Part shown: positions 11,618 through 42,468 of the stretch, in pieces
How the letters are laid out: every line of letters begins with the position of its first letter
Numbering within the stretch: the stretch's first letter is position 1
Assembly (NCBI GenBank): GCA_013115145.1
Contig: JAAPAO010000255.1
Location: 1-46,348, forward strand
Reading direction: 5' to 3'
Length of the DNA stretch: 46,348 bases
From: Perkinsus chesapeaki ATCC PRA-425
Lineage: Eukaryota > Protista > Perkinsozoa
Translations under genes and position numbers: made by a program
The notes under the pieces: generated by a model
Databases searched by the model: none
What the model saw: the letters and a program-made list of their open reading frames with translations, nothing else
Told to the model about the DNA's origin: nothing

Positions 11618-13246
11618 ATGGCCGAGTTTAGTATTGCTGTTACTAAGTGAAGCTCGGACGCAACACTGGTGCCAACTCTGCATTCAAAAGTGTCGCTAAT
11701 AACCTCGTTCTTTGACCAGATGCGTATAGGGCGGCGAAAGCTCACTACGTGAGCTGTGAGCGTTCGCCCCAATGTGACAGATATTCCGACATTTTTCATC
11801 TTGCGAGAAGCCGTTGGCTCTTTTTCGTGTTGGAAAATGACGAAATGTATGAGCCCAGATCGGTGGCACCCCAACGTTGGTCAGGTTCGGTTGGGCAACT
11901 TTGCTCCGCGACCGTTGGACCCCAGCGGTAACGAAATTCAAGATGCTGTTGATGAATGTGTCGATGAGGAGTTGGAAAAAATTAGAGCGAAACGGTTGCA
12001 AGATATGAAACGGACAGCACAAAAGGAAAGACAGGTAGGTTGGGATTGAAAAATGTCATTCGTAAAACGCTTCGCTCCGCTGCATGCTTGTATTACAGTA
12101 CGGTTTAATTAATGTGTAGCTTATGGAGAACGTAAAATTAGATTCCCTCACATTTCAGTCTTGAAAATTCAGAAGATTTTCGAAAATTTACGTATTTTCC
12201 CGGAAATTCTGGTATTTTTCCGGAAATTCTGGTATTTCCCCAACATTCTGGTATTTCCCCAACATACTTTGTTTCCTTTTAGATAGACACCGGAGGCAAA
12301 ATTAAAGATATTGCCCGGCAAGAATTCATGACCGAAGTCAACGAGAGCTCGAAAACTTCGGTTGTTGTCGTGCATTTGGCGAATTTGCACGACCCTATGT
12401 CGAGGCGGTTGGACGAATCTTTGTCGGTTTTGGCAAAGACAAGACGGACGGTGAAATTTGTCCGAGGATTTTATCAAGATTTGATTCTCGGATTTCCGTC
12501 GTTGCAGCTGCCAGCTGTGGTGGTCTATTCTGATGGAAAATGCGTAAAACAATTAATTGGGAAAGATGTATGGACGTCGAGGGTCGTCGAAAGTCCAACG
12601 CTGGTATGGAAAGCGTTAGGAATTAGCAAGCTTGAGCAAGATGACAGTAATGACATCTCATCAGTGTCTTCGGATGAGGGGCAACTGTCTTCGGAAAAAA
12701 AGCGATTTAAGATGAGTGTTAGGAGAGATGTTAATGATGGGATAAATAAAAGTAGGGGGGAAATCGGTATGAATTCACAGTAAAATACTACACTGCGATT
12801 TTCAAAACGTCTGTGGCGCATCACTGGTTCGTCAGAAGTTGCAGTGAATTGGGGAATAGATTGAGTTTCACGGTTATAGAGAGGCGGGCGAGTAGCGGTG
12901 AAATTTTACTCTTTCTTGATCTATTTTTTTGTTTTTGGTTGAGCTGGCCTTGAAGTGCACTGCTCACAGTTTCTGGGGTCCTCCTTTGTATTCCAAATGG
13001 TTTTCCCGTTCGAAGTTCAAGATTGCCGACCGATGTGAGCAAAACGTAGCAAAAAAGTAAAAGTGAAATGTGAAATTTAATTTATCATTTTCCGGGCGCG
13101 CGGTAGAGTTTGTTGGTCATATTTTTCTCTCAGGAATCGATCGACGTGAGAAGTCCTCCAGAAGTGAGGATGACATTTCCGACGACGACGACTCGAATGA
13201 GAAGGAATATTCCAATTTAAATTTGCAGAGGGTTTGGAGAGACTAG
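11618..13246 (+). CDS. Phosducin-like (thioredoxin-fold) protein; start tentative
   Basis: EELEKIRAKRLQDMK..KERQ|IDTGGKIKDIARQEFMTEVNESSKTSVVVVHL...VKFVR...LPAVVVYSDGK (intron 12035-12282). An acidic last exon 13134-13246 is phase-compatible with the donor at ~12762. Confidence 0.75.
12035..12098 (+). mobile_element. Intron element family carrying AACGCTTCGCTCCGCTG, copy 1
   Basis: Aligns from the donor onward with intron 28288-28339. Core at 12066-12082. Confidence 0.7.
12170..12270. repeat. Degenerate tandem repeat (CCGGAAATTCTGGTATTT-like) in phosducin intron
   Basis: About 4 copies of ATTCTGGTATTT with CCGGAA/CCAAC spacers. Confidence 0.75.
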
Positions 13247-13392
13247 TGAATTTTGGGGCGCGCGAGAAAATGTGATTGGCGTTTCCTTGCGAGTGATTAT
13301 TATTAATTATTGCTGTTTCACGTAAAGTGTAGTCGAGTTGGATTTTTTTCTCATTTTTGGTTTTAGTTTTGTGGCGCGCGGTTTTTTTTAGA

Positions 13393-14916
13393 ATGTCGAA
13401 TGTTACCACTTCCTTTGTAAATTCTACTTGTATTCCTGATGATTGGAGAGTCTTTTCTCTCACTTATGTGCCTTATCCAGCACAAGACGGAAAGGTAGGG
13501 AAACTACCAAATCGATCAAGTGGGCGAGCGCTTTTTACAGCGAAACTGGATTTGACCAAGTGCATCAATTTGCTACAGTGTGGGTCGCCAAGCTGCCGTG
13601 GGAAACGCACTCTTCACTGATGATGGGAAAATCCAACGAACAACTTGAAGTGTTAAAATTTTGTATTTACTAACGTATTCAGGCATCCTGGCACTATTGG
13701 CATCCATACTGATTGTTCTTCATATAGCTTTTAAAGAATAGATTGATTGGGATGAGTTGTTTCGTTGAGACTCGGAATTGATAGGTTGTGCGGATTGAGA
13801 TTTATTAAATCGATCGTGTGATCGATTTGTTTTTTCAGTTACTTGGTGCGATTTGGGGCCTATTGACTTTGTCGCCAATATTTGTTGCTTGGTCTGTTTT
13901 GACAATAGCATTAGTTCGTCAATCGGTAAGTTGAAAAATACCCTCGCCAGGGATCGAACCCGGGCATTTATTCCGGAGATTTCGAGCCTGTTGGAATACG
14001 TGCTTCAAGGTTTTCACAGTATCGTTGTCTCTCTGAGCTTGCCCTGCAGAATGACCGCAGTAGATGCTGCCCCCTTAATCCTCTGACCGTGTGAAAATAT
14101 GCCTGGAATTTCTCAGGGAAAATGCGTCCAGCCAAACATACGTGAATATATCTGTTCCATCTCTGGTGGTCTGGTAGCTCTCAGTAGTGGATTTGTCGGA
14201 GGTATTCACCGCAACTGCCTTTCGGAATCGATATAGTAGTAGCTGCGCAGTTTTCGTTTGTGTGCATGTGATGGCCCGTGTTTGATGGCGGTGGCAAGGA
14301 CGGGAAATTTCGGAGACCTGCAATCGATTTTTGCGTGTTCCTGTTCCAACGAAAATGACTCGTTCTCTTGACGAATCAATGAAGAAGAATGTGGAGGTTA
14401 ACTGAGGGAGGATAACACATGTCTTGTTCAGGTTCGCTGGTTTTTGCTTTTAATTGGTTTGATACTGTCAACCACAATAAATGAGATTCTTAAAGCGATA
14501 GTGGCAGAGCCGCGCCCAGAAGGAAGCTTCCGGGGAGGATACGGTATGCCGAGCGACCATTGCCAGTTTTATGGTTTTATTATTGCTTATGGGTAATCGA
14601 AAGGTCTCTGGTTCGAACCCCGGTGGAGGCATTTCTTGACAGGTTCTTGTTTGTTAAGCATCATGTTCAGACGCAACCATCTTGGATAAGATTCATTCCG
14701 CCTGTACTGGCCGTAGTTTTTATCTTTCTGCCTGTTGCGTAAGCATATCTTAAGGTCAAGCGTGCAAGATACGTGATAACTTAGATACTCGAGAGTTCAC
14801 CTTCTAGCACATACATGGGCGCAAGTTCGTGGAGGAGTGCTTGTTGGTCTGACCTTGGGATCAAGTTGGTTCTGGTTTGTTTATCAGACGCTTGAAGGTT
14901 ACGGGCTTTTATGCAG
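13393..14916 (+). CDS. DOLPP1: Dolichyl-pyrophosphate phosphatase (PAP2 family); 3' end unresolved
   Basis: Exons 13393-13494 (FSLTYVPYP), 13839-13925 (LTLSPIFV), 14432-14592 (LKAIVAEPRP..GMPSDHCQF), then AYSRVHLLAHTWAQVRGG. Phases are consistent. Confidence 0.85.
13808..13827. repeat. Palindrome family copy at the 3' end of DOLPP1 intron 13495-13838
   Basis: AATCGATCGTGTGATCGATT followed by TGTTTTTTCAG. Confidence 0.85.
13934..13970 (-). repeat. Antisense tRNA T-arm relic at the 5' end of DOLPP1 intron 13926-14431
   Basis: Reverse complement reads AATGCCCGGGTTCGATCCCTGGCGAGGGTATTTTT, close to the copies at 8098 and 31268. Confidence 0.75.
14593..14642 (+). repeat. 50-bp DOLPP1 intron that is essentially a sense tRNA 3'-half relic
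   Basis: GTAATCGAAAGGTCTCTGGTTCGAACCCCGGTGGAGGCATTTCTTGACAG. Splicing gives IAYG|FLFVKH in frame. Confidence 0.85.
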
Positions 14917-15575
14917 GTAACGGCTATCACCCTCTGGTCACCAAGATGACTTTCCACTGGGACTTTTTCCCGTAAATTTCCCGTTTTTTCTGTACATGTC
15001 TGTCGCTGAAATTTCCGTAAAATCTACAGCTTTTTTGGGGAATTTTTTCCGAAATTTTCTTTGGTGCTATAATCACCAAAGAAGGATTCTTGCCCTGTTC
15101 GGACCTGTTCGGAAATTTCAGTGATTGCTACGAGAATCTTTGCTCTTCTGCATTTTTTTATTTTCCGGAAATTATGACAAACCTCCGCTTCAGTAATGTT
15201 GAATGATGCCGGAAAAGTTCCTACTTTTGGTAATTCTCGGGAAAATTAATTTCTCTACTATTGTCATCAGATTGCAATCCTTTATCGATCTAATGATGAT
15301 GAACAATGTCCAGAAGCATCTTTGGGTCACCAGAATGTACAAGCGCGAGAGAACAAGTGTTCTTCATGGTACACCTACCAGCTCACCGTCCCCAACTGCT
15401 TCGTAACAATGATTTTGGGGCGCGCGGGAGGTATGTTCCTTCAGGTTGCCGGTTGATGGTGAGAAGAGCCGTAAGGTTGACTGAGCGTTTTAACGCGGGT
15501 AAAATCGTTACATTTACAGTGAATTCTTCATGTTGATTTAGTAGTGTTAATCATGCCGGGTTTTCCTTTACTGAT

Positions 15576-16421
15576 ATGCCGATGAGCGGCACGAAGCGTC
15601 CTCGATCGAATGACGATTGCCAAACTCCTCCGCAGACCCGCGCCAGAAAAGATTCCATTCTGGCAGCGGGACTCACTCCAAGGTCGAGCTGTAAGGTGCC
15701 ATTCTTGTCGACGGAAGATATCCTGTCACACGGAGCGGTTGTGAATGTGCAGAGCGTGAATTATCCTGACCTTGCCTGGGGGGTTGATAGGAATAAGAAG
15801 CAACTTAAAATAGTGTCGAGGGTTAAAAGCAAGAGCGTGCTAACTTTGAAGATTGTGAGGAGTTCGTCGAATCCCAGAGCAATTGCCTTCCGTCTGAGAA
15901 CCCAGTCGGATGTCTACGTTGCGGTTCACAAAGCGGAAGGGTATCTTACATTACGACGGCAACCGAACCCAAAGAATCTGACCTCGCAGTGTTGGTTTAT
16001 GGTGATGGCCCGAGCAGCTGGCGACCCTGGATATGTCTTGCAGTCGCTGGGAAGTAGCGGGGAGAGAGAGTTTGTTCGGCACTGTAATTACTGGTTGCAA
16101 TGTGATGCGCCCCCGGAGGTCAGCGCACCGTCGAGGGCGATCTACGAAGGCGACTCTGCATGGTTGTTCGTGAACGCGGAAAAGGCTGTGGATAGACTTG
16201 GTGATTTATGGGTGCACGTGGTGGCGCCGAAACCGTATGAAAGAATCGAGGCGCAAGTTGTTAAGTGTAGATCGGCACTTGGAGAGGATTCTGAGAAGGC
16301 TTGTAGGGAGCTGGAGAAGTTGGTGGACAGGTGTGATGTGGAGAACGAGTCCTATGAAGTTCAAGGTGAGCTAACTTGTGGAGAGGCGCGGCTTGTTCTG
16401 TACAGAACGAGGGCCTGTTGA
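15576..16421 (+). CDS. Intronless protein with AbfB/CBM42-like beta-trefoil domain
   Basis: 281-aa ORF. VQSVNYPD, AFRLRT and FVRHCNYWLQCD...YEGDSAW resemble AbfB repeats (S.N.P..(Y/F).RH.N..L..D....F..DA.F). Basic low-complexity N-terminus and no signal peptide. Confidence 0.55.
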   Translation: MPMSGTKRPRSNDDCQTPPQTRARKDSILAAGLTPRSSCKVPFLSTEDILSHGAVVNVQSVNYPDLAWGVDRNKKQLKIVSRVKSKSVLTLKIVRSSSNPRAIAFRLRTQSDVYVAVHKAEGYLTLRRQPNPKNLTSQCWFMVMARAAGDPGYVLQSLGSSGEREFVRHCNYWLQCDAPPEVSAPSRAIYEGDSAWLFVNAEKAVDRLGDLWVHVVAPKPYERIEAQVVKCRSALGEDSEKACRELEKLVDRCDVENESYEVQGELTCGEARLVLYRTRAC

Positions 16422-16889
16422 CGAACGTCATTTCTTGAGCTCTACCGGGACGCGTTCGCAATGTCTGCTTTCTAGGAACGTACTTTTCTCAGGAGACCTA
16501 TCATTGATAAGGAAAACTTCCATCATCCATTAGTAACACTTTTTGACCCACAAGAAACAGACTTCAGTGGGGTTATATTAACCCCTGTGAAGCCAGCAAG
16601 ACCCTCCTTCCCAGTTACTAGTGCTAAAAACAGATATTTTCGGAGTAACTTAATTTCGATCTCTTGTATGATCTCCGAGACTGTTCATAAATTATGGGTT
16701 TATTTGACATCTACAATAGCTAGTTCAAGACGCACGTGAAGTATATATATTGTATGCTCGCAGGTCGGCGACACGCCTTGTAGGGGAATAAGGTCGCGTA
16801 GTAGTACAACTTCATTTTCACCGTGCTTGAGTATCTCAACCCGAATTTGACGTTGAAATATAGCCGTAACTGAATTACATTGCAATTTA

Positions 16890-17814
16890 CAGGTGCTGGT
16901 GGCATGTCCGGCGTCGCTGGTATTATGTTTAAATCACCATTGTATGATGAGGAGCTAACAGAGGAATTGTTGGAGAGGATCGAAACAGCAGGGCCATTGA
17001 AGAGACGAGGAGGGATAAAGACGTTTAAAAGGATGGATGAGATAAATCCCGAAGCCGTAAGTGATGGGCTGTGCCGAGAATTGAACTCGGGACCTCTCGC
17101 ACCCTAAGCGAGAATCATACCACTAGACCACACAGCCGTTGATTATTTAAGGCTCCCTGTCAGATACCCTTCATCAGGGAAATTGACAAACGTGTAAGAC
17201 AATTACTGGGGGAAAGGAACTCCACCAACATTCGAAGAATGGGCCTTGCAAAAGAAGGGCTTTGGAGACAGAAGCTGAAACTAGGCTTTTTAGAATTCGT
17301 TTACATGCAAGCTGGATCGAAGGGGATGGCACGGTAAGCAACGATATCGGAGGGATGGGCGTTAAACAGCTGATGAAAAAGAAGCGATTAACAGTGTTAT
17401 AGAAAATTGATATAATTCAGAGTGAATTTTAGCTAGCTTTTATAGCTCCCTCGATAACTTACTATCGTATCGAAACGGAGCTGGTGAGCTTGAGGAGTAT
17501 TTACTTCCCTTCAGGCACAGAGATGGCGCAAATGACAGCGACTTTACGGCACTTTTCTGCATCACAGGGAGTGCCGAATGCACTATTGAGAATGAGAAAT
17601 TCGTTCTTAATGAGGGAGACATGTAAGATGATGTGTTTTATGTACCTTCTTTATTTTTTCATTTTAGGTATATTTTCGAACCACACAAGTACTTCCATTC
17701 GGTTGGGCCGCCAATGCACGGTACATGTCCGATAGATGCATGTTGTTGTTGAATGTTGGCTTTTCAGATAGAAGAAGAATTGCTGTTGCATGCCGATACT
17801 TTCTTGAGGAGTAA
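16890..17814 (+). CDS. 2OG-Fe(II) oxygenase-like protein; start approximate
   Basis: Spliced product contains an HxD motif (PFRHRDG..DFTALFCITG), LNEGD, YIFEPHKYFHSVGP (distal His) and a terminal RRRIAVA. Stop at 17812-17814; intron 17057-17151 is in frame. Confidence 0.65.
17066..17137 (-). tRNA. trnP-AGG: tRNA-Pro(AGG), intact, antisense inside a 95-bp intron
   Basis: GGCTGTG TG GTCTAGTGGTATGAT T CTCGC TTAGGGT GCGAG AGGTC CCGAG TTCAATT CTCGG CACAGCC C: acceptor, anticodon and T stems pair perfectly, 72 nt, A and B boxes present. Confidence 0.95.
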
Positions 17815-18889
17815 TTCTCACGCAATGAACTGGAATTATTTTTCCATGGCTGCCTTTGTGTTTTGGTTTGAGAGTTGCATGTCACCAAACCTACGCCGAA
17901 CGCGCCACACGGTAACGCTTTCAATTGCTAGATAAAAGGCTTCCTAGTAGCAGCGAAGATAAAAGTGCATCTTCGTGGTATACAGGAGCATTGTTGCTTG
18001 ATATTCGTTAATAATGATGAATATAAGGCGAGAAGGAAGTCAACAAAGGCTTCCTATTCTCACGTAACTCTCGCGAGGGCGGCAAGCATCTGTGTAGAAC
18101 GCGAGTAGAATGGAGCGGGCAGCGCACGATGAATAACAAGCACAAAACATCGATATCAAAAACTACTTCGTTTTGGTAGTTCTGCGCACTGGACTAGTGG
18201 CTCATATCTCCCAATCGTGCACTCTCTGGAGTGGACGACTGGCGGTGGGGAGCATTACCCGGTAATGATTACCGGTTAATTAGCTCCATCGTTGGATTCA
18301 ATGACAAGGCAGTGCATTGTCCATTCAAGAGTGAGCAAGCTTAAAGCGTCACTTCCCGAATATGGGACATGACGCGCCGCGGATCGCCTGGCGCACAGCT
18401 GTCGCTGGTTCCCATAATCGGAGTCCCATTGTTAAGGGCAGTCCGATTCTAATAAGTAGCAACTGACTGACATAGATAAGCTCACTATCCGTGTTTCTCT
18501 TTTTTTCACAAACTACAGCGTTGTCATGCACACAGTACCGCCGACTTCCTAACCATGTCTGAGGCGTGTCCAGCATCGCACAACGAATTGCACAGTGTGC
18601 GCCGCCTGCAAAACAAGTGATGTTTGTACGGAAATTTAAACATTCCTTCAATTTTCCATCCCATAAAATTCTTCTGGGGGCCCAGAATCATGTCAGTCGC
18701 TATAGATTCACTGCAAATTCGACAGTGTCAAATAGTGCAGGCTGATATCATACGCGCGTGCCACTCTGAGCCACGGGTTGTCGTCACTAGCACGCATGCA
18801 CGAAGCTTTGGGCTCGGAAGTTTCCGGCTGGACTTCCCGACTAGATTAAAATAATACTGCCAAGAGTTGGTAGCTTAGCATTCGTTAGC

Positions 18890-19976
18890 ATGGTGTCACT
18901 CCTTGGCCTACTCACTGCTCTCCCGGTTGTAGCCAGTTGCACTTTCTACAAGGGAATACTTTACCCATGGGTTACAAAGGAAGATCCCATGTGCTTCGAC
19001 GTAGCAAAGGAGTGTCCTCCCCTCAACTACACCTGGGACGAGTATTTCAGCAACCTAACTCATCTTGGTTCAGCGAACTTCGTTCTTGGTGGATACCGAA
19101 TCATTAACAGTAAGATCATGACTCGTTTTCAAGACGATAAGCCATGGGATAAGAAGGCTTTCAAGAAGCTCCGAGTTATGGCTTCTGCAAAGAAAGGTTC
19201 TATTTTGGTCGACCTTGGAGTGTACTTTGAGTATAGTGCTCCCTTTGACGAGACGCTCTTCTTACCGAGTCTGGCTGAATTCCTGAGCAACTATAGTGTC
19301 GACGGCTTCGTGATTAGTTTATCACCCTACAGAGATCAGTTTAGTACTAACTTAGGCAAGGCTCTACATGCTATATCGACCAAAAGCGTAGCCGCGCTTA
19401 GGTAAGCCACTCCAGAAATAGCTACTGTACGTGAAATGGCATTCAGGTTTCAACCGTACAATTGGAAGGAAGTTAAAGAGGCGGGTTTGACAAAGTATAC
19501 AAAAATCAATTTCGTGCCATTGTGGCCAAATGACGATCCTGCTGTTAAGACCTTCAATACAGAAGATTTTGCCGACAAAGTGGTCCAGAATGCTTCTTCG
19601 GCCGGTGTAAGCAAGAGTTCGTTAGTTTTGGAAGTAAGTTGGGAAGTTCTCGAGTTGAATTGGGTATTGAATGCCTGCGCTGGTGCCTCTGTTGGCTGCA
19701 GCAGATTATGATTCGGAGCCGCTTGGATACTCTTGCATGGTATACGACTATCATGCAGATCCATATGGAGATGGTATTGTGGTGGTGGATGCCGAGAAAG
19801 GTTGGCATTACTATTTCATATCTCAAAAGCAAGCAGTTGAACGAGCCAAACTAAGTAAAGCACTTGGTTTACATGGAATTGCATTACAAGAAGATGTCCC
19901 CAATGACTATCGGACGGACATGTACCCGTGGGACGATAGATCCCTTTTTTACGGCTTAGCACATGAGTTTAGATAA
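18890..19976 (+). CDS. Secreted GH18 chitinase-like protein lacking the catalytic DxDxE motif
   Basis: Signal peptide; FLSNYSVDGFVISL at the position of the DGxDxDxE motif; LVLE|VPLL; LGLHGIAL..DD. Intron 19402-19446 is canonical; the second intron 19634-19682 ends in TG. Confidence 0.7.
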
Positions 19977-26563: not shown

Positions 26564-27226
26564 TTGAATGGGGAATTGGTTCACAAGCTTCACGAATGGA
26601 AGGAGTATAGTTTTGATTGTTTTCCATTGACTATGAACGAGAGCACGTCATGGTCGAGCTTGATTGATAACGAGTTGACTGCAGCGGTTAAACGCCAAGA
26701 GGAAAAATGTAAACAAATGGATGTCGACGGAGCGACGCAAGATGGGTTCCAATACGGCCTGTTCGAAAAGGCTTGCAGGAGTAAGCGTAATGTGGGGCCG
26801 GCGGGGAGCAGGTTGAAGCGACCGCGGATCAAGGATGACTCTATTTCACCGAAAAAGGGGAGGAAAAAACGGCGGAGCGAAGCAGAAATTACTGAAACTA
26901 GTTTGCTGGATAGACTTTGCGAGGATGAAAAACAAGCGGGTGATGTAGTGGTGTCGAAGAGGGCCGCGGAGCTGTTGGCTGAGGCGTGGGGAATGGAGGG
27001 GCACCTGGAGCAGCCGAGCGACGAGACGATCGAACGGTTGGAGGATGAGAGTGAGGGACAGCTGGATCGGCGATGTGTGGTGGGATTTTGGGAAAAGCAG
27101 AGGAAAAGGGAGAAAATAAAAAGTGGTGGAAAGGTGGATAAAGGAAAGGAGAGGAGCAAGCTGTTGAAGGTTAAGGTTATGAGGACAGATGTGGTAGGGA
27201 AGGGGGTGGGGGTGGGTAAATGTTAA
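26564..27226 (+). CDS. Hypothetical charged, probably nuclear protein (long terminal exon)
   Basis: 220-aa ORF with NLS-like KKGRKKRR. Preceded by an acceptor-like CCCAG, so upstream exons are possible. Confidence 0.6.
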   Translation: MNGELVHKLHEWKEYSFDCFPLTMNESTSWSSLIDNELTAAVKRQEEKCKQMDVDGATQDGFQYGLFEKACRSKRNVGPAGSRLKRPRIKDDSISPKKGRKKRRSEAEITETSLLDRLCEDEKQAGDVVVSKRAAELLAEAWGMEGHLEQPSDETIERLEDESEGQLDRRCVVGFWEKQRKREKIKSGGKVDKGKERSKLLKVKVMRTDVVGKGVGVGKC

Positions 27227-27391: not shown

Positions 27392-30288
27392 ATGTCGAAG
27401 TAGGCGGACTCGGAAAACGTGTGTCATATTTGAACCTTATTTACTTTGACGGACGATCGCTGGTGGCTGAGGAATGGCCGGGAATGGGACAAAGAAGCTC
27501 TCGAGAGTTTTGGGAATCCATTTCGCCGGATTGACATTTGGTTCACAGTATGGCCGAAAGTGGCTTAGTGTGATTGGACTCTATGTGTTTGTAAATGGGC
27601 GAGGTGGTTCTGCGATAGTATCGAGTTGATATCCGAGGTTGATTAGTGCACTTGATGTGCGGAAAGGATATGTTTGTGTCGAATAGGTTACTCGTAAATA
27701 CATGAAGGCGCTTGCGAAAGAAAGCAGTCCTATTGTGAGGCGAAAGGCGTTGTTGTCGATTTTTAACGATCCTTCAGAAGACGAGAAACCTGAGGTTTTA
27801 AAAAAGTACGTCACCAGGGATCGAACCAGGGACCTTTCGATTGGGAATGCTTTGTTGTCAGCTTTGTTAATCGTAAGGGTATCGAGCTGCTCGGTGAATG
27901 GCTCAGCAATTTGGTGAGCGATCGGAAGCCTAACGTTCCGCTGGCGGAGGCGTGTTTGGGTTTATTGGACGAGTTGGACATAACCGAAGGAACTCTGAGA
28001 AATACGGGAATAGGCCGAGTGGGCGGAATATTTTTGTCACTGCGCCACGAAATTGCCTTAGGTTGTTACTGCCGTGGTGAAACGGTTCGCTGGCGTATCT
28101 GAGGGGGTGGTGACGGGCGGTCGAGAATTGTTGGTAAAATGGAAGGATATGGTGACACGCTCGAGAAGGCCGTCGGCGGCGGCGGCGGCGGAGGAGCGAA
28201 CTGATGGAGAGTGAGCGCGGCAGAAACGGTGAAGTCGATCGCATTGTTTATTAATTTCAGGGGAGATGATTCGAAGAGCGAAGAGAAGTAGGCGGAAATG
28301 GAAAATGTTATTCGTGCAACGCTTCGCTCCGCTGTCTAGGTCCCGGAAAGATGGAGCTGGTCTTGAAGGGGTCTTGGAGGAGGATGAGATGAAAGGTTTG
28401 TGTGAGAGGATTTAGGGGACAGATATTGTGTGATTTTAGTTCCAACGGGGGAGGAGGTCGATTTGGATTCGTTGATGGATTTGATGGGAGAAGTGGATGA
28501 AGTGAAAGAGGATGCGCAGATTGGCAGGAATTTGAATGATCCATTGGATCCTTTAAGGTCGGCTTGGCTTAGTGGTTGAGCATCGAGGTCTCATGCGAGA
28601 GATCCTGGTTCGATCCTTGCATAGTATGTTTTTAGACTCATGGCACTTCCTGGGTCTGAGGACTTTGATGATGAAGAGCAGCCATCAACAGGTGTAGTAA
28701 TTCCCCCTGTTACTGAATACTGTCCCCGAATTCGATGGAAGGAGGATAGCGAGCTCGTATCGATGGTGCTGTTTCAGAAGAATGAGCCGCTCTGGGACAC
28801 AGTTGCGTAGGAATAGCCGATCGTTGCGGTTAACGTTTGCTGGTGATAAAAGGATTTTAATAGTCATATTGTTGGAGGTTCGGAGAGCGATGTATACAGT
28901 AGAGATTGAAGATAGGTAGCTTTAACTGATTGCAGATGAATGAGATACAATGTATATCCTCTACTGTCAAGAATAGATATTGGCGTAGTAGAGCCGTGGA
29001 AACAAGAAAAACTGATAGCTTCGATTATCGAGAAGGCTGCGGTCCCCGAAAGCTCCCTTATTTGGTGAATAGTAGTGCTTCAATGATACCACTATTTTAT
29101 TTTTCTACCATATAAGCGATGACCATCGCTCCTGTATATCCAAGGGGCCTTCGGGTTCGAGCACTTGGGGTGTCATTTGTGATTGCAGGTTTGATTTTGG
29201 ATCCTGTCATTTCAGGGCGATCAGCAACGCTAGAGGGAAGCATGTAAAGTATGTCGAACATGGTCATACGAGCAAGTTTGTAGAGCAGCGGAGGAAGGAG
29301 GCTGCCATGGTGAGTTGGAAGATATTACTGCCTCCTTCATCTTAGATATTGATGTTATTATATTTCACTAGTGCATTATAGATATTAATAATTATCATAA
29401 AGGTATTTCGAAAATCCGTGAGTACGTTCGGTCGAAAGTTGGTGGACCCGCGACGCTGATCTCTGCATGCTCTCTTCAAAATTTCGTGGAATTTTGTGGA
29501 GCTCGCATGCGAGGGTGAATAATTGATTCTTAAAAGTGTTCACGGAAGCTCACGTTTTCCGGCTTATCACCATTCATTACGTTATATACATTAATAGAGA
29601 TGTGACGATTCAAACTCTATTAGTAATTATTAACAGAATTGGATCCATCATTTATTCCATTATTAACCTTGCTACTTGGTACCCGACTGATTCTTTCTGA
29701 ACATCACCTACGAAAAGGGGATTTAGTTTTTGTTCGGCGTCGTCTGCTACTTGGTCGTCAGGGACGGGGCATCGGCAAATTTGACGAGTTTGCGATGATG
29801 ATGCCCTCGCGATGGCATGTGAATAAATTCTGCAACATAAATCGTTCATACCGCTCTGTTCTTATTTCTAGGGCGGTTCTGGACTTGGTCAACGGCACGG
29901 CGAGACTCCTCGGGAAAACAGCAAATCTGAGGCGCGTGACTCTGTGACGCCATCAGTCATTTTTGATCCTGATGCGGTTCCCTATATCTGCGTACCTCCT
30001 GATTGTGCGGTGGATGATAAAACCCTAAGCTCGCGGAGTTACGAGCGTCAAGACTTGGCCGATCTCCACGGCATTCGGCCGGAGGAACTATACGATAAAA
30101 CTCGCATACCGAACTCGCCCGCGGAACCGGACGCGCATTCGGGCGTGCTTGGCTTGGTTAAGCATGACTCGACGATTCACATGCCGCTGAGGAACAGACA
30201 AAGAGATCGCTCACCTCCATCTAAACCAGAGGACCATAAAGCAGGTAAATTGGAAGGCTTGAGGAGCTTCGGATTTTGTTACTGGTGA
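27392..30288 (+). CDS. PNUTS/PPP1R10-like protein (TFIIS N-terminal domain plus PP1-docking motif); ends approximate
   Basis: FVNRKGIELLGEWL...LDITEGTLRNTGIGR|VV...LLVKWKDMV (TFIIS-N/LW domain); PRIRWKEDSELVSMVLF (RVxW, ~28700-28760); LYDKTRIPNSPAEPD. Confidence 0.7.
27806..27845 (-). repeat. Antisense tRNA 3'-half relic at the start of 56-bp intron 27806-27861
   Basis: Reverse complement reads AATCGAAAGGTCCCTGGTTCGATCCCTGGTGACGTAC. Splicing gives VLK(N)|FVNRKG in frame. Confidence 0.85.
28019..28061 (+). mobile_element. 43-bp intron sharing an identical 20-mer with 43-bp intron 8508-8550
   Basis: GTCACTGCGCCACGAAATTG at 28036-28055 and at 8528-8547. Confidence 0.7.
28288..28339 (+). mobile_element. 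AACGCTTCGCTCCGCTG intron family, copy 2 (whole 52-bp intron)
   Basis: GTAGG...GAAAATGTTATTCGTGCAACGCTTCGCTCCGCTGTCTAG. Splicing keeps the frame (SEEK|SRKDG). Confidence 0.75.
28558..28635 (+). pseudogene. Full-length degenerate tRNA-like sequence forming an entire 78-bp intron
   Basis: A box TGGCTTAGTGG (28565-28575), D-arm GCTT/GAGC, TGCGAGAGATCC (tRNA-Pro-like), B box GGTTCGATCC (28607-28616), T-run then AG. Splicing gives DPLR|LMAL in frame. Confidence 0.75.
29143..29178 (+). repeat. Weak tRNA T-arm relic in putative intron 29134-29188
   Basis: GGGGCCTTCGGGTTCGAGCACTTGGGGTGTCATTT. Confidence 0.35.
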
Positions 30289-31879: not shown

Positions 31880-32399
31880 CTTTTGATACTCTAAACGAGG
31901 ACCACTCAATTCACTTCCCAAAAGAGAATGCGTAATGATATCATCTTACGCATTTCCTTATGTGCTCCAAAGGCAGTAAATTAACGAATTATAAGTTATA
32001 AATTATAACTTAGGTGGTAAATTGACATATTTAATATGAGTTAATTTACTGCCAGTTATTATTCACGTATTCAGTCCGCGAGGATGTACTAAATACTATG
32101 TACCAATTGATCTGAGTCATTTACCCGATCCTTCCGATCCTGGGGTCTATTAGATCCTAAGGCTCGTGCGGATTCGGAATCACCAGGTGGATCTTTAGGT
32201 TCTCTTATATCTTTCTGCGGTGTGTTGACGAGAAGTGAGTTTGATAATTAATAGGGTACATGTTTTAAATGTCTGACCCGTTATATGTGCCAGATGAGGT
32301 ACCGAATGATACCATTACCGTTGTAGTCCCTGCTGAAGATGGCTATGTCAACGAGCAAGGTGAGCAGCATTCAGCCAAGTGTCAATTCAACTAGCATGA

Positions 32400-33000: not shown

Positions 33001-33633
33001 CCGAAATTGCCATCTCTTGTCAACATACTCATCCGCCCACAACTAATTCTTAAGTGTTCGCACACCTTCGATCGGTGAAACTTTCACCGTGAAGGAATTT
33101 AATACCTGTATTTCGAATCTAACCCTGCCACAAGCATCGAATCCAAGAATTGACTCCTCCGACAGTTAGTTCCCAAGATCTGGACATGCCCCATTATGGG
33201 ACAAGGTTACGCCCACATAGATATCAAACGGGAGGGACAGTGCGATTCTCACTTAACGACTCTAATTAACGACTATTGGTGCTCAACAACCGGCTTAGAG
33301 CCGCGCACAAGCACGGCATGAGCGGAAACGGGTGAATACAAATCGCATGGGAGTCGGTGCTGCTAACTGAAGTTTCTGTCCTGTTAATCTCTCAACTTGA
33401 GAGCCTCAAGTTCGTGTTTTGAGTACCTAAGTTCAATTACGGCCTAGAGCGGTAAGACATCGTGGTAACCGTCGCGAAGTGAAAACCGCGTTTGTATTGA
33501 CTACAAAGTTTGCATACATTAATATTTCAACTACGTCATTCTGGGAGTGGTAATAAGTGAAAATCATATTCACTTTCCTCCCGATGGCTTACTAAGTGTT
33601 TCAGGACCCATCGTTCCTGACGTTTTGAGAGAT

Positions 33634-33651
33634 ATCGATCAGCCGATCGAT
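33634..33651. repeat. Palindrome family copy in putative minus-strand 46-bp intron 33617-33662
   Basis: ATCGATCAGCCGATCGAT. The minus strand reads GTCACACCC...AAACGTCAG. Confidence 0.7.
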
Positions 33652-34390
33652 TTGGGTGTGACGAATAAACGGTATCGTGAAGAGGCTGTTGAGGAGGGTA
33701 AGTAGCATTGAAAAAACCTGCCGACTATTATTCTGCGGGAATACTTCTACCAGACTTGCAGAAATATCTAAGAAGGCATTTTTGGGGTACTGTATCTTCT
33801 TGCTTTTTCTTGGTTTGCGCTCTATCAAATTTTCCCGAAGCTCGAGGGTGCGAAAGTGGCGCGAAACTCCGTGAAATGTCTTCGAAGTTAAAAAGTTGAA
33901 ACTACGTATCACATAAAAGATAGAAACTAAAGTCAATGTGAAGCGGCAATTTAGCTTTTTTGCATCTCATTCATTAATTTTCTCGCGGAAAGCGATTTAG
34001 TGAATAATCAATCGCTTTTGCATGATGATGTCATAGAGCGCCACAAAATTTTCCATCCGTCCGAATTTGCCTCATATCTCTGTATAGTGTGAGTTTCTGT
34101 GAAACTAGAGTACTTCCTGGAAGGGAATCTAGTGGTCGATAAGGGGAGCTATAGTATTATCCTGAAAGCCATCCTAACACTGCAGCATGGCGTTTGCTTC
34201 CTAACAGTGCAGAACCAACTTCCAGCGTTGGTAATATATTGATGATAAATCTGCTCAATAGTAGCTATTCTTACCCGTCGGCTAAAGTTAATCCAATTTC
34301 AGTCCAAAATGAAGATAATCTTCAGAAGATTGTATCGCACTCATTAAAGTGATGGGTGCACACATTCCCTACTACTAATAGCGTTTCTTC

Positions 34391-37300
34391 AGAACTGCTG
34401 GGTGTTCCCAAAAGACAACGGGTCGATGTGGGAGGCTTGGATGAACCTAAGATACTCTCTGAGATTCACGAGCCACCACCGGAGACTTTGCCCGCTGAAG
34501 AGTTGCCGATAGTAAGCAAGGCGGAAACTTGTTGATTTATACTAACGAACTGAAACTCATTTGAGCATTCAATTTCGTATCAATCGCAGATCCATGCGAC
34601 GTGCCAGTCGCAGGTTCATATAGTAATCTCGATAATAGTGCATATTAATATATTGCTAAGGAGTTCAGAAGAAATGCGTTGAAGGTTTATACCTTCATTC
34701 GTAACTCTTCAAGTGATGATAGCAACATCATCAACCCGCACTACGGCCACCTGTACATGTTGAGTATTAGTGGCTTGTTTAGGATCAGTCAATGGTGCCG
34801 CTGCCTGTCTATCGTAGCAAACGATCTATTTTCGAGTTTGGTAACTACGATCGATATTATAACTATCGCCATGAGACTCAGGTAAGAAGAGTCTTTGTCG
34901 GAAGGGAAAATCGCACGAGGAGTAAGACTTTTCCAGTGGTGAGAAATGTGCTATTTGGAGAGTAATCAGAGATGGAGGCTGCAACATGTACCTGTCCCGA
35001 GGTGGCGTGGCATAAGTACTCCTAATCTCCGAAGTTTACTTTATCAGAGGTGTAGTCAGTCATAAATTTTTCCCATCACGAGTCAGTCATAAATTTTTCT
35101 CACCCCCGGATGAGATGGGGGGAAAATAAACTCTCAAGAGGACCTGATTCTCAACATCAGCGAATACCCGCGAATGGCGAAATTGCGCTTAGAAGTCCGA
35201 TGATATTATTATCATGACGGACTCCCGTTGACTGTGTCATACTTAGGCGTTCGTGGATTCAAGACTGAGCGCAATAATGCAATATCTTGGCGGAGATAAG
35301 CTCGACTTTTTTCACGACAAGACGGTCCTGGATATCGGGTAGGAAATCTACGTAGATTATTACTATATATTATCATACAATTATAAATTGGAATTGGGAT
35401 TAAGTATTTCATTTGGAGGTTGGAGAATAATACAAATGGCATAGATATGAAACAGTATTTCCTACATTTTGGCAGAACTCTTTTTAAAGATGACAAGTTC
35501 GCTTGTCAATTATAAAGGATAAATTTCAAATTCACTTTGATGTATATTTTTCGGGATGGTCTCAGGGAGTCTTAGTGGAGCACCGAACGTGTTCAGAAGG
35601 GAAGCGATGTTTCTGTTAAACAGAAACTTTGCTCGATTGGGCAACGAAATAATATAGCCTCCATATGTTCGTATTGAGGGAGCATTTTTCGACCTTTGTG
35701 GAGCGCATTCCCGTGACGGTCGATGCCATCGACTAGATGGAAGTGGTGGTCTAGGATTTCTCTGTCACAATAGGTTCGTCATTTTCAGGTGTAATATCGG
35801 TTTTATAACATTCTATGTAGCTTATATTCTTGGTGCCCATAGAGTAGTTGGTATTGATATAGACCACACTCTTATCGACCAGGCGCTTAGGCAGCTTAGG
35901 AAATATAAACATGATGGATTTCCATTAAACGAGGTGAGCCCTTCACCAGTAGGACCGTGACGTGACGTATCTTTGCATTAGGTAGCTTCAAGCTCGCTAG
36001 CTGCACATAAATCACCGTCCCTTGGCCGACGGAAGGCCGCGGCGCTCGAGCCGACTTTCCCAATAGCGTTGACACGGCGGGCCGGAGTGCCGCCGATCAC
36101 TAATAAAGTATTGTGTGTTGCCGAAAAGCACGTGGAGGAATTCGTGAAACCATAGTAAGTCGGTCCATATGTGGGAATAGGCACGTCCCATTCGACTCGG
36201 ATCTATTACTGTGTATTTCTGTTGAATTCTTACGGATGTGGCGCGTGGAATGGGTGGTCTAACTAAACCATACTTTAAACTCGCACACACTGTGGATGAT
36301 TGTGTGTTCTTCGGAAAAGCTGTCAGCAAACACTCTCACTGGGAAGAGAGTTGTCTATCAATCATCGATATGTATTGAATATCATTATTACACCATTACT
36401 TAGAGACATTAGTAATTAGCTCGTATATCTAAATATAACTAAATACAGTATTATATGATAAATACTGTGATACTTGTATTGTAATTAATACAGTCTGGTC
36501 AAAAAAATTGTCCAGCGCCGATCTGAAAGTGATGTAGATCGAGTCTGAGGATGAAAATTGTAGCACTGGATCAGAAATTTGTTGCTCTTTCCATTGGTAT
36601 ACGATTCACCTGCGCACCGGCCCTATCCCCTGAGAGATTAGAATCTTAGAAAATTTCTGGCGGCCCAACGTAAATTATCGAACCTTAATCTCGCATTTCT
36701 CCGCAACCTGATCGAATCTGACATCATCCAAGACACCGTTGTAATCAGGATGGCATGCACTTTCGATTAGTGCTTGAACCTCCCGGAGTTGGTGAAGTTT
36801 CAAAAAATGCTGACCCTTTGGTTTTGTTCTCTCTTGGCGGGCGCCCAGCCAGGCATTTTTACTTGAAACAACTGAGCTGGTTGGTTCCGGACACCGAAGT
36901 CTAATGCGCTGCGCTTCATTTTGATTTTTTTTTATTTTTTTTGACCAGACTGTATATAAACTGTAGTTCATCACATCTGTTCTTAGTGGCAAAGAGAAGG
37001 TGTCCCAGATCAGCGACCGATTTCCATTTAATATCGAGTTTCGAACGGAGGACATCTCGGAAGATACCGTTGACATTGACGTTAATGATGGATCGACTAT
37101 GACGGTGGCAGCACCGTGTAGTTATGAAAAAGAAAAGTAAGAAGCTCTCTGAGTTTCATAAGTCACAATGGTTCTCATTATGAAATATAGATGATACTGT
37201 ATAAGGATAGATTGTCAGGCAAATGAGGTTACTACTTTTTTTCAGGTACGATGTTGTGTTGTTGTTATCCGTTATTAAATGGATTCAATATCACAAGGGG

Positions 37301-38268
37301 GATGACGGAGTAAAACACGTCTTCAAAAAGATCTACGATCTTCTCAAGTAAGATGTTACTCTCAAAGGATTAACCGGATGAATTTCATCCTGTCTCTGAT
37401 TGTATTTTTAAAACCGTAACATTTCCTTTTGTTTCCTTGAGATACAATTTCAAGTTTCATGAGAAATATCTTCGAGCGCGAAATGCAACATTAAATTTGT
37501 TTCTTACGTGCTTTTGTGGGCTCTAGCTGTTACTTCTACACAGTTGTAGTTGGATGAAATTCGGGGAAAAGTAGATGCTTGGTATGGATAATTGCAGATA
37601 GTGTGGATGACAGGGCTTGAATTTATTCACTCAGACCGGGCGGACTCTTTATATTTGAACCACAAGACTGGAAATCATACAGGAAGAAGCGCAACCTAAC
37701 TAGAGAGATACGGTAAGTATAAATGATACCATTTGGAGTACAGAAATTTGGCGAGTCTCGGGGTATTTCTGTCCGTCTGTCTTTACATGGCAAATTATAC
37801 GCAGTATTTTAAACACGTAAATCTGAGTCAAAAGATGGATCTTCATTTAGCTAAGGCGTAGAGGGTAATCCGGGTCTATGGGATTACTCCTTGCATTCCT
37901 TCCCATTTCATTCACTTCATCACCATTGGTGTTTCATCAATTTTATCAGGAACAACTACAACTCTATCAAACTGAGACCGGCGCAGTTCATTGATTACTT
38001 GGAGAAAGAAGTTGGCTTTCGTTTGGAATGTACATTGAAACCAAGTCAGGGTAAGTGGCTTGCAATATAGCTCGCAATTCGTGTATGTGCGGTAGCTACA
38101 CCGGCGTGTGATGTCCGAGGATTCGATCGGCCTTTGCATTTATTAAGGAAGCCGGCAGGCGAATGTGGTGATAAGAAGACCCCACCGACAGCGGAGGTCC
38201 GGAAAGTTGAACCTGATAGGTATCTTCATCCAACACTATTTTCCAATCAATCAGATGGTGGAGGTTGA
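34391..38268 (+). CDS. Bin3/MePCE-family RNA methylphosphate-capping methyltransferase; start approximate
   Basis: Spliced motifs FEFGNYDRYYNYR, DSRL...KTVLDIG|CNIGFIT...VGIDID, FPFNIEFRTED, YDVVLLLSVIKWIQYHKGDDGVKHVF, PGGLFIFEPQDWKSY, LRPAQFIDYLEKEVGF, GFDRPLHLLRK. Confidence 0.9.
36491..36952. mobile_element. Non-autonomous Tc1/mariner-type DNA transposon (MITE) in a Bin3 intron
   Basis: Perfect 17-bp TIRs CAGTCTGGTCAAAAAAA / TTTTTTTGACCAGACTG, flanked by TA on both sides; 462 bp; no transposase. Confidence 0.85.
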
Positions 38269-39474
38269 ATCTATGGCTGTTGCGTTTGTGTTAAAACTAT
38301 TAACTTGACTAGAGAACGTCTTGTCCGCTTCTGTCCTGGACACTGCAGGATATATAGTCGTCATTCGGATATACTTGGAAGCTCTCAACCTGAATGCGAG
38401 AAATGTTCTTGACTGCTGATCTCATCGGTGCATCGCTGCTGTTCGTGTGTTCCAATGAAGTATTAATATGGACTGAATATATCTCAACTCCGTGTGTGAA
38501 CCACACAATGTGATATATATTCTGAATGCCAAAGAATGTCTATTCTGTCATTACCGCAGAGGAAGGACGCGATCTGTGATAGCTCGTAGGGAGAAAATCT
38601 TATAGTGCATTGTTGCCAGTTGAAACTTCTAACAATATGTTTCTCGTTATCTCGGTACAGCAAACTCGAAAATTTTAGGGACAATGTTTGAATCATCTTA
38701 TTATGTGTTCTTCGCCAAGAGGGTGATGAGGTCTAGCAAAGCTATAAGGATCCAGTCACTGCTAGAGACCAAGAAAGGCGCTAACGTTAATAATGTGAGT
38801 CGCTCGTAATGGACGACACTCGTGCTCCGGTACTGGGTTCACTTTCGGCATGCTCGGGACTCAAGCCTTAAGCTTTCGTAGGGCACGGCTATTCTCAGGT
38901 TACCACTGTCGGAATTTATCTGCATGGATTTCCTGATAGTGGGGTCCGACCAATCAAAAGCCGAGGGGAATTGCGGTTAACGGATGGCCTATTGCCGTAA
39001 GCCTGACTACGCGGCGTAGTCTACGCCATTCTTTCTCGGAGGAACTTTATTTTTTCTCTTGCCGTATAGGATAAAGAATTTGGTCAAATTCTTCAAGTAC
39101 GTGTATGTCGTTTCATATTCAAGGATTCTACTAACGGTCTTCTCAATGACCATGGCAGCAAGTTGCTGCCAGCAACAGTTGCTGAGCGACATCTATGTAT
39201 ATCGTTGGTTCTTGGTATTAACAGTAAACCTGGTCGCGGGTGGTACCGGCACCTGTGATGCCCATGTAGTGCAGCACTACGTAACCATCAACTTGTCCGG
39301 AGCCTTATGTTCTAATCGTGGATCTACTCGCTATGGTCAACACGTTCATGTTCGTATCGGATCCTGTTTTGACGAACCGCCAGGTCGGAACCGGCCTTGA
39401 CGATAAGTAGTAATCCTGCTTGGATCCCAAGTCTTTGGGTGGATTGTAACAACCCCGCTGCTCATGCATGCCCT

Positions 39475-39681
39475 CACACTCGATCACGTATTCCCTCACG
39501 CTCGATCGGGCATGCCTTCACGCTCGATCGGGCATGTCTTCACGCTCGATCGGACATGCCTTCACGCTCGATCGGGCATGCCTCCACGCTCGATCGGGCA
39601 TGCCTTCACGCTCGATCGGGCATGTCTTCACGCTCGATCGGGCATGTCTTCACGCTCGATCGGGCATGTCTTCACGCTCGA
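39475..39681. repeat. 22-bp minisatellite (CACGCTCGATCGGGCATG[C/T]CTT), 8 full units plus degenerate and partial units
   Basis: Units start at 39497, 39519, ... 39651; partial unit at 39673; degenerate unit at 39475. Confidence 0.95.
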
Positions 39682-40506
39682 ACATTCCATGGACGGTTCC
39701 TGATAAATTAAGAGACCGCTGGAAGCAGTGATGATAGTTCGAGTACCATTTCGGCTTTCTGACAGCCGCGCGGGCCACAGCGCAAGACACCGAAACCATT
39801 AGATACAGGTGAGGAAGCCATCGAAGTTGACGATAACTAATGATGTTGGCGAATTTTCTTGCCCTAAGGAAAATAACACTTTCAGACTGAAAGTTTCAGT
39901 GGATCTGTTAGTTCAAGCTAACGTCTTTAACCCCCAATGGTTATACTAAATCGGATGATATCTATCTGTGCGTGTACGTATAACATTCAATATCAGACTG
40001 ACGAGATCAACGAGGACATTGACAAGCCAACAGAATTGGTCCAACCAATGTGTGACAATTTGTCGAGGCTCGACCAATTTGATCGAGACCGCTATAATGA
40101 AAGAATCTCCCCAAACCTGGAAACATGATAGATATGATGGAGGTTGTCGTGAAAGTCCTTATTGTTGATGTTAGCATAATAAAGGTTGGAAGAGTTATGG
40201 CTCTCCACCTAATAAGATTCCCGGTATAATCATTTCTAGACTAGAAATTCTAGTATTCGGGTTGGTTGTTCAAAGTTGGCATGGGCCATTGCATTAAGTG
40301 AGACTCTCACCGTGAGAGGAAACCGACTTCCAAAAGAATCATCGGGGAAAAGCTGACTTCCAGTAATTCACTGGGAATTGAATCTTAATGGGTAAGAGTA
40401 TTTCCTTGCTGAGCAAGAAGAGTCTCTCCTCACTCGGCCTCCGTGAAGGCAGCATATGCCGCCTAGTTCCAAATTATATACAGTAGTCGCAAGTTAGTTC
40501 TCCCAG

Positions 40507-42371
40507 GTTGGTGGATGTGGAGTCGGCTAAGGTCGTCCATGGCAGTCGTATGAGCTCCAAGATGTCGGAAGCATTCCTTTCTAGCTCTGATGGAGATAAC
40601 CTCGCCTACTGTTCTTTCAACACGAATGGAGTTCCGAACTCTGAGTGAGACGAAACTTCTATTTCCCCCGTACTGGTTTGCTTAGTGGTGATTTCTATGA
40701 CAAAACTCTCATTAAAGACGTCGCTGATTTAGAGGCTGTTACCTCGTGGTTAAGGGAACACCTTCGGAGTCTCGAGCGGATATTCCTCATTGGCTTCAGC
40801 ACCGGTGAGTATTCATGTACGACTGGTTCCAGCTCCTCACTTGCTTGCTGAGACCACCCGACTCATCAGTGGACGATTTGGGTTCAATAACCAAATTTCG
40901 CTCGACTTAATTCGCGTTCGCTCCGGTACCTATTACAGTGGACACAGCGCTTTCACGCTACACGCGACACGCGCTCAGGTATTCAAGCCCAACTCAAACG
41001 CTTTCACGCGGCCCCTGAGACTGTGCAAAAACTGCATCTAGCAGATCTTGTTTCCACGCTAGCCTATTCATGGGCTGGGGAAAACCAATTCACTAATTCG
41101 TAGACTCCGAATGCAATTCACCGCCCATACAAATTTAGCCGGTAGCTTGTTCCAACCTGCCCTTTCAAGGTGCATTTCTGTCGGTTTGCGCTCCAGTGAT
41201 GACCAATGTCGTCTCCGAGAAGAGTCGTGCCTTGTTAAAAGGTGTCATTTCCATTGCGTGTCTGAGCGATCCCCATATTGGGGCCAAATTGGATTTCAAC
41301 CAGGAGCAGGTGAACTACTACTAGTACTCTACGAGAGCCTGATTTCCCGAAATATATACGCGGTTTATTATTGTAGCATTCCCAGCCACTCTCCGTCATC
41401 CGTAGCTCGCTCTACGGGCCTATGTGTGCGCCGTAGATAGTTTATTCGATTTGGTTATCTACATCATAACCCCACAACTCATAGCTCCAAGGCCAGAACG
41501 TTTCCTGCACATGGCAGAAGACTTTTGGAAGTTGTTCGCCGAACACTAATTTCGAGATGTTAATTTAATATTGTTGAACTCGGAGATGGGAAAATCTACT
41601 TCTACAGTGAGGGAAATTAGTTTCGAAAAATGACAGAGTACTTCGGCTGATGTCGACTATCAACCGAGACATTTTATGCCAGATAACTGCATGCCAAGAA
41701 ACAGGCGAGTGTCTGGTTAAATTCTGGCCTCTACTTGAAGTTGAGGTCAATGTGGGAACTGGTGAAGTTATGAACAACAAAGGAATCGAAGAGGCTTCTA
41801 AAGTAAATCGCAGCTAGAAGGATAAATCAGATATTCGGCTGCCTCAGCCTGAACCTGTTGAGTGGCGGTTGAGTCGAGCGTATTATGATAGCTATCTGGA
41901 CCTCCCAGCGAGAACCGAAATCACCAAACATTGGCCGGAAAAGCTGCCATTACTTTTGGTAAGGTTTATGCTCGAAGTGTCTCATTAGTTGGTAAATGAC
42001 AGGTCGTCCTTAGGTTCATGGTACAGGGGACGTGCTAGTTCCAAACGAGATGTCCGCTGAACTCCAGAAAGCCTTCCCAGTGGACACGACAGTCACCCGC
42101 ATTACGGTGGGACAGTTTCCCCTTAGCCTCTCCTAAAAAGCATTTGTTCTTTAATATTCGCTGGATGTCAACCAATATTTAAAAATGCACAGCTACGCGA
42201 ACATGCTGTATGATTAACCATAATCAGCGGAGCGAAGCGTTTCATGATTCATATTTGTAGGTGGCCGGCGCCAATCATTTCTTCTCGAGTCAGAAAGATA
42301 TGAAGAAGCTCCAGCTAGCAGTTAAAAACTTCTGCCACGATTTGAATGCTCAAACAACCAGCTCTTTGTGA
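40507..42371 (+). CDS. Alpha/beta hydrolase; 5' exons unresolved
   Basis: VVHG, GDFYDKTLIKDVADL, nucleophile elbow IFLIGFSTG, LLL|VHGTGDVLVP (Asp), VAGANHFF (His), stop at 42369-42371. Confidence 0.85.
42225..42241 (-). repeat. AACGCTTCGCTCCGCTG family copy 3, antisense, in intron 42107-42260
   Basis: CAGCGGAGCGAAGCGTT is the exact reverse complement of the 17-mer. Confidence 0.85.
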
Positions 42372-42468
42372 GCGGAGCGACGCAATATTCATTTACTTCC
42401 TTAACACCCCAGCGGCTAGTGTCACATTGAAAGAGCCATTCTGCGCAGTTTGATAGAGTTTTTGTCAT

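Follow-up and report, generated by a model that had tools for sequence, protein, structure and literature searches.

Bursts of intron gain are at present explained mainly by introners, and few of the mechanisms behind such bursts are documented. Introners are known from Micromonas, Aureococcus, dinoflagellates and others (Gozashti et al., PMC9860276) and from Amoebophrya (PMC7789003), with the main texts of the introner surveys making no mention of Perkinsus and the Amoebophrya genome paper making no introner claim for it (PMC7789003). Here we describe a short repeated unit in the genome of Perkinsus chesapeaki ATCC PRA-425, three copies of which lie in introns of unrelated genes on contig JAAPAO010000255.1 (assembly GCA_013115145.1); the stretch analysed, 46,348 nucleotides (nt), is referred to as the window. 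On a slender balance of probability the unit is an introner-like short module that is also a landing pad on DNA, with a core that a protein would recognise and that guides the integration of elements of the long terminal repeat (LTR) type.

Integration of LTR elements is known to be position-specific in some cases, with Ty3 inserting at RNA polymerase III start sites and Tf1 near Sap1 sites. A similar precision is found in the Dada DNA transposons, which include families of Perkinsus marinus that target transfer RNA (tRNA) genes and in which a sub-terminal motif of the element is the same as the target motif in the small-RNA gene (Kojima and Jurka 2013, PMC3706591). In the literature no description was found of the motif reported here, or of motif-directed LTR integration in Perkinsus.

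The unit is 32-33 nt long and consists of a 19-nt A-rich arm, RAAAA-N-G-NN-AAACATGAAW, followed by a 13-nt core, CGCTTCGCTCCGC. Copies were counted by pattern searches of the 41.7-Mb assembly, with the reversed pattern as control. The exact core was found 463 times (control 1), or 1,096 times when up to one mismatch was allowed (control 59), with about 1,040 such copies credited to the family, and a 17-mer that includes the core was found 101 times with up to one mismatch (control 0). The copy number of the module is put at roughly 700-1,000, and as a specific 33-mer at about 1,000 unrelated sites must have been copied, the family is a repeat in origin.

The borders of the unit were drawn from 100 exact-core copies aligned on the core, in which the positions from -19 to +13 are rich in information and those at -20 and +14 carry none. 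An arm was scored as present at 11 or more of 16, a score that 0.36% of random sites reach, and it was present in 37 of 47 dispersed exact-core copies drawn regardless of their flanks. A search with the arm only gave 31 sites (control 0), all 31 of which have the core; just 11 of their 403 core positions are altered, mostly by C-to-T or G-to-A transitions in the CpG-rich first bases of the core, which is 97% identical in these arm-anchored copies. Within the arm, near-fixed and free positions are mixed, with identities of 42% to 99% (chi-square 197, 18 degrees of freedom, a value inflated by selection of the copies on arm score), the free positions -14, -12 and -11 sitting between fixed ones. 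The core is under stronger constraint than the arm.

A longer parent element was rejected, as the 150-nt flanks of 83 copies hold no common sequence, all-against-all BLAST of these flanks giving self-overlaps only. Alignment, folding and flank comparison gave no inverted ends in the unit, no hairpin was predicted on either of its strands, and Rfam gave no match to it even at E up to 10. An origin from U6, considered because the junction of arm and core seemed to resemble vertebrate U6 in its 3' part, was dismissed, as the genome's own U6 has no similarity to the unit. Occurrence in other organisms was likewise rejected, one metagenome scan with a 20-mer giving three GC-rich bacterial chance matches that read as the signal peptide MKRFAPL. 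Some units also stand in close direct pairs, at spacings of 43 or 61 nt, and a single inverted pair, about 105 nt apart with its arms outward, was noticed among the 83 copies (L003:1240-1320, L043 and L044 with 61 nt, L038:231-361).

It is apparent that the units lie largely within short GT..AG intervals, in either orientation, where they make up 60-85% of an intron of 38-60 nt. In the orientation given to the motif by the initial annotation of the window, here termed S, a donor such as GTAGG or GTAAG stands 3-15 nt upstream of the arm, with the acceptor immediately after the core (..CCGCTGTAG). On the opposite strand, termed R, the donor adjoins the core (GTAG followed by GCGGAGCGAAGCG), the reverse-complemented T-rich arm yields a branch-site-like TTCAT or TTTAC and a pyrimidine run before the AG, and the AG itself is found 2-15 nt beyond the T run. 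Some R introns of 38-46 nt are almost wholly the unit plus GTAG and AG, with longer introns sharing the 33 nt only.

Assigning the host strand from open frames alone proved useless, with 83% of random sites passing, and a codon model trained on 36 long open reading frames (ORFs) tells the strands apart weakly; a stricter layout test was used instead, requiring a GTR donor, a YAG acceptor, a length of no more than 62 nt and at least 20 open codons on each side. This test was passed by 39 of the 83 copies (24 as R only, 12 as S only and 3 as both) against 23% of random sites, its false positive rate. The classifiable samples, in which loci picked via the 17-mer are skewed towards the S type, suggest that the R layout is about twice as frequent as the S layout, and the orientation in the initial annotation is probably the minority one. 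A GT is found 3-4 nt ahead of the unit in 19 of the 47 sampled copies, a tight placement in the R orientation, and across the genome 100 of the 463 exact cores show this arrangement. The 17-mer that joins donor and core, GTAGGCGGAGCGAAGCG, has 27 exact copies in the genome against about 1.8 expected, by hand count of the matches listed, and the word GGCGGAGCGAAGC has also been noted near 5' splice sites elsewhere in the genome. The exon that follows an R-type intron starts with GT (..AG|GT) in 11 of 26 cases (L010, L029, L038, L042, L043, L046, L049, L080, L084, L095 and position 42260 of the window), a hand count that has no baseline of ordinary introns; this may be the trace of a GT target duplication, or a preference of the genome for such exon starts.

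The same core is a target for other repeats. Two families, R1 and R2, both begin TGTAGC and are found as their first 70-72 nt at contig starts or ends (31 of 31 matches), their bodies being absent from the assembly. In 11 of 26 distinct flanks the distance from the core to the repeat start on its 3' side is exactly 11 nt and the orientation is always the same, whereas spacers and upstream sequence all differ. A search for the end of the core followed by TGTAGC after a gap of 4-24 nt gave 20 matches (control 3), 12 of which have a gap of 11, a count that includes C181, whose core is duplicated at its end and was measured from the true one; the remaining eight are spread over seven other gap lengths, and these are at chance level. 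Together with two insertions at a mutated core this gives 14 independent insertions at +11, and the core is the precise integration target of two TGTAGC-ended families.

Two of these 14 insertions have gone into an armless core that belongs to R1, or to an R1-like end, and lies 9 nt from the terminus, so the core alone seems to suffice as a target. The first 72 nt of R2 contain no core, though R2 targets the core. By analogy we take R1 and R2 to be LTR-type elements. Targeting of tRNA genes by R1 and R2 was ruled out, there being no tRNA gene near the insertions in 24 R1/R2 flank loci. Ahead of R2, at L062:1-80 and at L067 (minus strand), there is also a 38-nt tandem repeat whose first 11 nt are the same as those of R2, TGTAGCAAGTC.

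A further repeat, R3, links the unit to LTRs. It is 422 nt long, of the form TG..CA, and its two loci (L040:379-800 and L091:1481-1903) show 97.6% identity; downstream of the L040 copy there are a primer-binding-like TGGTAGCAG and a gag-like ORF of 300 amino acids, whose match to SCAN is weak (E 0.054). When scored by hand from the alignment, R3 positions 2-34 qualify as a unit, reaching 11 of 16 on the arm test, with the core at positions 21-33; the core stands 20 base pairs (bp) from the element's own end in R3 and 9 bp in R1. We take R3 to be an LTR-type element that begins with a copy of the unit. The L091 copy of R3 looks like a solo LTR, with ATAT on both sides. The fixed integration at +11, together with a core near LTR ends, argues for a word that is read on DNA by a protein, and the DNA word itself is probably recognised by such a protein, a point with a bearing on the coexistence of introns and mobile DNA.

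Within the window the 17-mer occurs exactly three times, at 12066-12082 (+), 28318-28334 (+) and 42225-42241 (-), against 0.05 expected, and none of 100 shuffles of the window reached three. The introns and units concerned are as follows.

12035-12282 (+): intron of a phosducin-like, thioredoxin-domain gene, with an S-oriented unit near its 5' end; exon 1 runs as ..KERQ to 12034 and exon 2 as IDTGGK from 12283.

12049-12081 (+): unit copy 1, with the arm at 12049-12067 and the core at 12068-12080.

28288-28339 (+): 52-nt GT..AG intron of a PNUTS-like gene, of S layout, the unit making up 63% of its length; the flanking open frames are of 27 and 24 codons and their codon score is positive.

28301-28333 (+): unit copy 2, with the core at 28320-28332.

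42107-42260 (+): intron of an alpha/beta-hydrolase-like gene, with an R unit at its 3' end whose T-rich arm leads into the acceptor ..TTTGTAG.

42226-42258 (-): unit copy 3, with the core at 42227-42239.

42368-42412 (+): 45-nt GT..AG interval, a candidate intron, with a decayed R unit at 42371-42403 whose core has 2 mismatches; it overlaps a TGA that was read as a stop.

The strings quoted in the initial annotation all occur where it had placed them, and what it proposed is partly borne out by the family as a whole. It had taken the introns at 12035 and 28288 to be homologous; both do begin GTAGG and align through the motif, but what they have in common is the unit of 32-33 nt only, and some 200 nt of the 248-nt phosducin-like intron lie outside the unit and are unrelated to the family. 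The antisense 17-mer that it saw near the end of the hydrolase intron is there, in a copy that stops 2 nt before the AG. The start of this intron at 42107 is the boundary of the initial annotation, at which a GT is present, and the layout scan chose a shorter GT..AG interval with the same acceptor. A degenerate antisense copy, AGCGGAGCGACGC, is likewise present at 42371-42383, but it may belong to a small intron and not only overlap a stop codon; the reading frame ends within 3 codons whether the interval 42368-42412 is spliced or not. The annotation's larger claim, that unrelated genes carry introns with a common copied sequence, holds for a large family whose hosts include thioredoxin/phosducin-like, PNUTS-like, hydrolase, midasin and trehalase genes. 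It had also allowed that only these copies might exist, between paralogous host exons; neither is the case, because the family is large, with 463 exact cores, and the host exons are unrelated. No second allelic or paralogous copy of the PNUTS region was found in the assembly. At 26872-26884 (-) the window has a core with one mismatch, TGCTTCGCTCCGC, which has no arm and is probably not a member of the family.

Support for the host genes comes from homology searches in which exons and read-through ORFs were queried singly. The phosducin-like gene is supported by homology and its exon junction is matched, 12034/12283 agreeing with the P. marinus protein XP_002784526.1 (..KEREVDTGGK..), its nearest named relative. 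For trehalase a Pfam match spans the in-frame read-through and supports the identity of the gene, its 45-nt R intron being a reading of the sequence, and for midasin (L095) homology supports both the gene and the position of its 42-nt R intron. Comparison across species made use of ORF-type gene calls of a P. marinus-like assembly, which can be read where they run into an intron. One of these, P0001, is 69% identical to the phosducin-like exon of the window. Another, P0002, is 89% identical to the L095 midasin ORF up to ..WNLRDV, past which P0002 reads GYVLGLAQ and then a stop, and this genome reads GGAKRF.., the translated unit; the next midasin exon of this genome is not continued in P0002. 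As read from these translations, the midasin gene of P. marinus is interrupted at this same codon by an intron that starts GTN GGN and has no unit next to its donor, in a comparison of one locus at the protein level that covers the donor-adjacent part, with a unit deeper in the P. marinus intron possible. This shows, at this site, an intron that would be older than the unit, or else a unit lost in P. marinus. An intron that is shared, with the donor-adjacent unit absent in P. marinus, speaks against the unit having created it, and recent intron gain is not supported at this one readable site, where P. marinus has the intron. A search with the trehalase ORF for a second cross-species case gave no match at the E cut-off used.

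How the family might have arisen can be pictured as follows. An insertion process that acts on DNA would have spread copies of the module over many sites, and the module may behave as an introner-like cassette, harmless since it would be spliced out. At least sometimes it may have entered a pre-existing intron instead of making one. The core could have been kept near-unchanged through binding by a sequence-specific protein, either the integrase of the elements or a host factor, and such binding would also explain the fixed 11-bp offset.

When set beside introners, the Perkinsus family shares the occurrence of hundreds of look-alike introns in unrelated genes, a repeat that supplies most of the intron including the sequence adjacent to the splice sites, and a host that is an aquatic protist related to Amoebophrya. 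It differs in that the unit is 33 nt and not a whole intron, has neither inverted nor direct terminal repeats nor a demonstrated target duplication, works in both orientations, has a core far more conserved than the rest, and in the one case tested occupies an intron position that would predate it. Miniature inverted-repeat transposable elements (MITEs) and solo terminal inverted repeats are also short, non-coding and discretely bordered repeats of high copy number, but the unit is shorter than known MITEs, has no inverted ends and, to judge from the 83 copies, among which one inverted pair was noticed and no dedicated scan for pairs was made, has no partner arm; the terminal inverted repeats flanked by a target duplication that define a MITE are not seen in it.

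For the logic of targeting, Dada is the closest published parallel. In both cases insertion is strictly sequence-specific into a conserved multicopy target, and a short motif close to the end of the element recurs at a fixed distance in the target. Unlike Dada, the target here is an intronic repeat and not a small-RNA gene, and the R1 and R2 ends, known from 70-72 nt at one end, start with TG and are LTR-like. As with Ty3 and Tf1, both the distance and the orientation of R1 and R2 relative to a landmark on DNA are fixed, which implies tethering to a bound protein; in contrast to those elements, the landmark is a 13-bp intron word, with no tRNA gene near the insertions.

Several points weigh against the unit being an introner-like module and landing pad. 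The hallmarks of transposition (inverted ends, a clear target duplication and a source element) were not found, and to our knowledge 33 bp is shorter than any known mobile unit. A selected signal would account for conservation of this position-specific kind at least as well as a young repeat would. Host strands were assigned from splice layout and open frames, with the false positives in controls given above, the class of R1 and R2 rests on their short ends with the bodies missing from the assembly, and the comparison between species comes down to one intron, seen through a translated ORF. The binding of a protein to the core is itself something that we infer.

The main rival is that the unit is an old selected cis-acting word in pre-existing introns, either an aid to RNA splicing or a protein site on DNA, which was seeded long ago, is no longer copied and is held by purifying selection on about 1,000 sites. 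This is possible without being probable, and it is compatible with the module, not exclusive of it. In favour of such a word are the position-specific conservation, with free positions between fixed ones and a core 97% identical, the greater frequency of R than of S in the classified samples (24 against 12 of 83), and the midasin intron position common to P. marinus. However, the same word serves in both orientations, the S cases of the window being validated, which argues against a single RNA-level signal; in P. marinus the midasin intron, though shared, lacks a donor-adjacent unit; some copying process would still have been needed at some time to give a thousand copies of one 33-mer; and copies are also found in LTR ends. 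It is unlikely that the units derive from LTR ends, with the core as the sub-terminal recognition site for the integrase of one LTR clade (R1, R3 and relatives), and that they now draw insertions through binding of this integrase to the same word in the target, although the Dada transposons offer a parallel in a sub-terminal motif that is the same as the target motif at a fixed distance (PMC3706591). Consistent with such an origin are the core 9 nt from the end of R1 and 20 nt from that of R3, the arm score of R3 positions 2-34 (11 of 16, as in 0.36% of random sites), and a fixed 11-bp offset that includes self-insertion into the core of R1. Yet the first 72 nt of R2 are without a core in an element that targets it, dispersed units do not start with the TG of an LTR end and have no information at -20, and the location of units in introns is left unexplained. 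We also know of no mechanism that inserts 33-bp fragments of LTR ends.

The initial annotation had itself suggested an intron family moved via a single-stranded DNA intermediate, with the very stable mini-hairpin GCGAAGC and a partner of HUH/Helitron or DDE type. The complement of the heptamer does lie in the core, as it said, and the family is large and dispersed. Against this, neither strand of the unit folds above shuffles (z +0.7 to +1.4, under an energy model that has no special stability term for the GCGAAGC mini-hairpin), the conserved block of 33 nt far exceeds the heptamer and includes the unpaired A-rich arm, the TGTAGC-ended repeats beside units do not have Helitron-type ends, and no longer HUH, Helitron or DDE element with the ends of the unit was found in a search that covered the flanks of 83 copies. 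Movement of this kind is very improbable.

Other elements were noticed alongside the family. A U6 gene is split at GCGCAA: in L103 (G000:C2248:314-412) U6 positions 1-70 give way to unrelated AT-rich sequence, and in L104 (G000:C633:1204-1255) the 3' part of U6 (GCGCAAGGATGACACGC..) comes after unrelated sequence. Target site and duplication are exactly those published for Dada-U6, and the Dada families reported from Perkinsus are only tRNA-targeting ones (PMC3706591). In the window there is an intact tRNA-Pro(AGG) at 17066-17137 (-), scoring 56.9 bits in Rfam, short tandem repeats at 12185-12262 within the phosducin-like intron, with units like CCGGAAATTCTGGTATTTTT and CCCCAACATTCTGGTATTT that are unrelated to the family unit, and an assembly gap of undetermined bases at about 10440-10540, which appears as X in the ORF translations. 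A pattern of the spliced leader, which we take to be of the dinoflagellate/Perkinsus type, has 31 matches in the assembly (control 0).

Returning to the unit as a module and landing pad, a more specific and rather doubtful proposal is that the core is the binding site of an integrase domain of an LTR clade or of a host factor, and that the approximately 1,000 copies housed in introns are safe-harbour pads, themselves descended from LTR ends, that direct retroelements to +11. If true, this would be a self-reinforcing partnership between introns and mobile elements, which is not described in alveolates. The family stands apart in that a 33-nt cassette fits tiny introns both ways, a 13-nt core is far more conserved than the rest, and the same word is a precise integration site. 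Perkinsus species are important pathogens of shellfish for which genetic tools are beginning to exist. Should a protein indeed bind the core, Perkinsus would be a tractable case of motif-directed, intron-sheltered integration, and the family would give a direct test of whether short words in introns act as parasites, as signals or as both.

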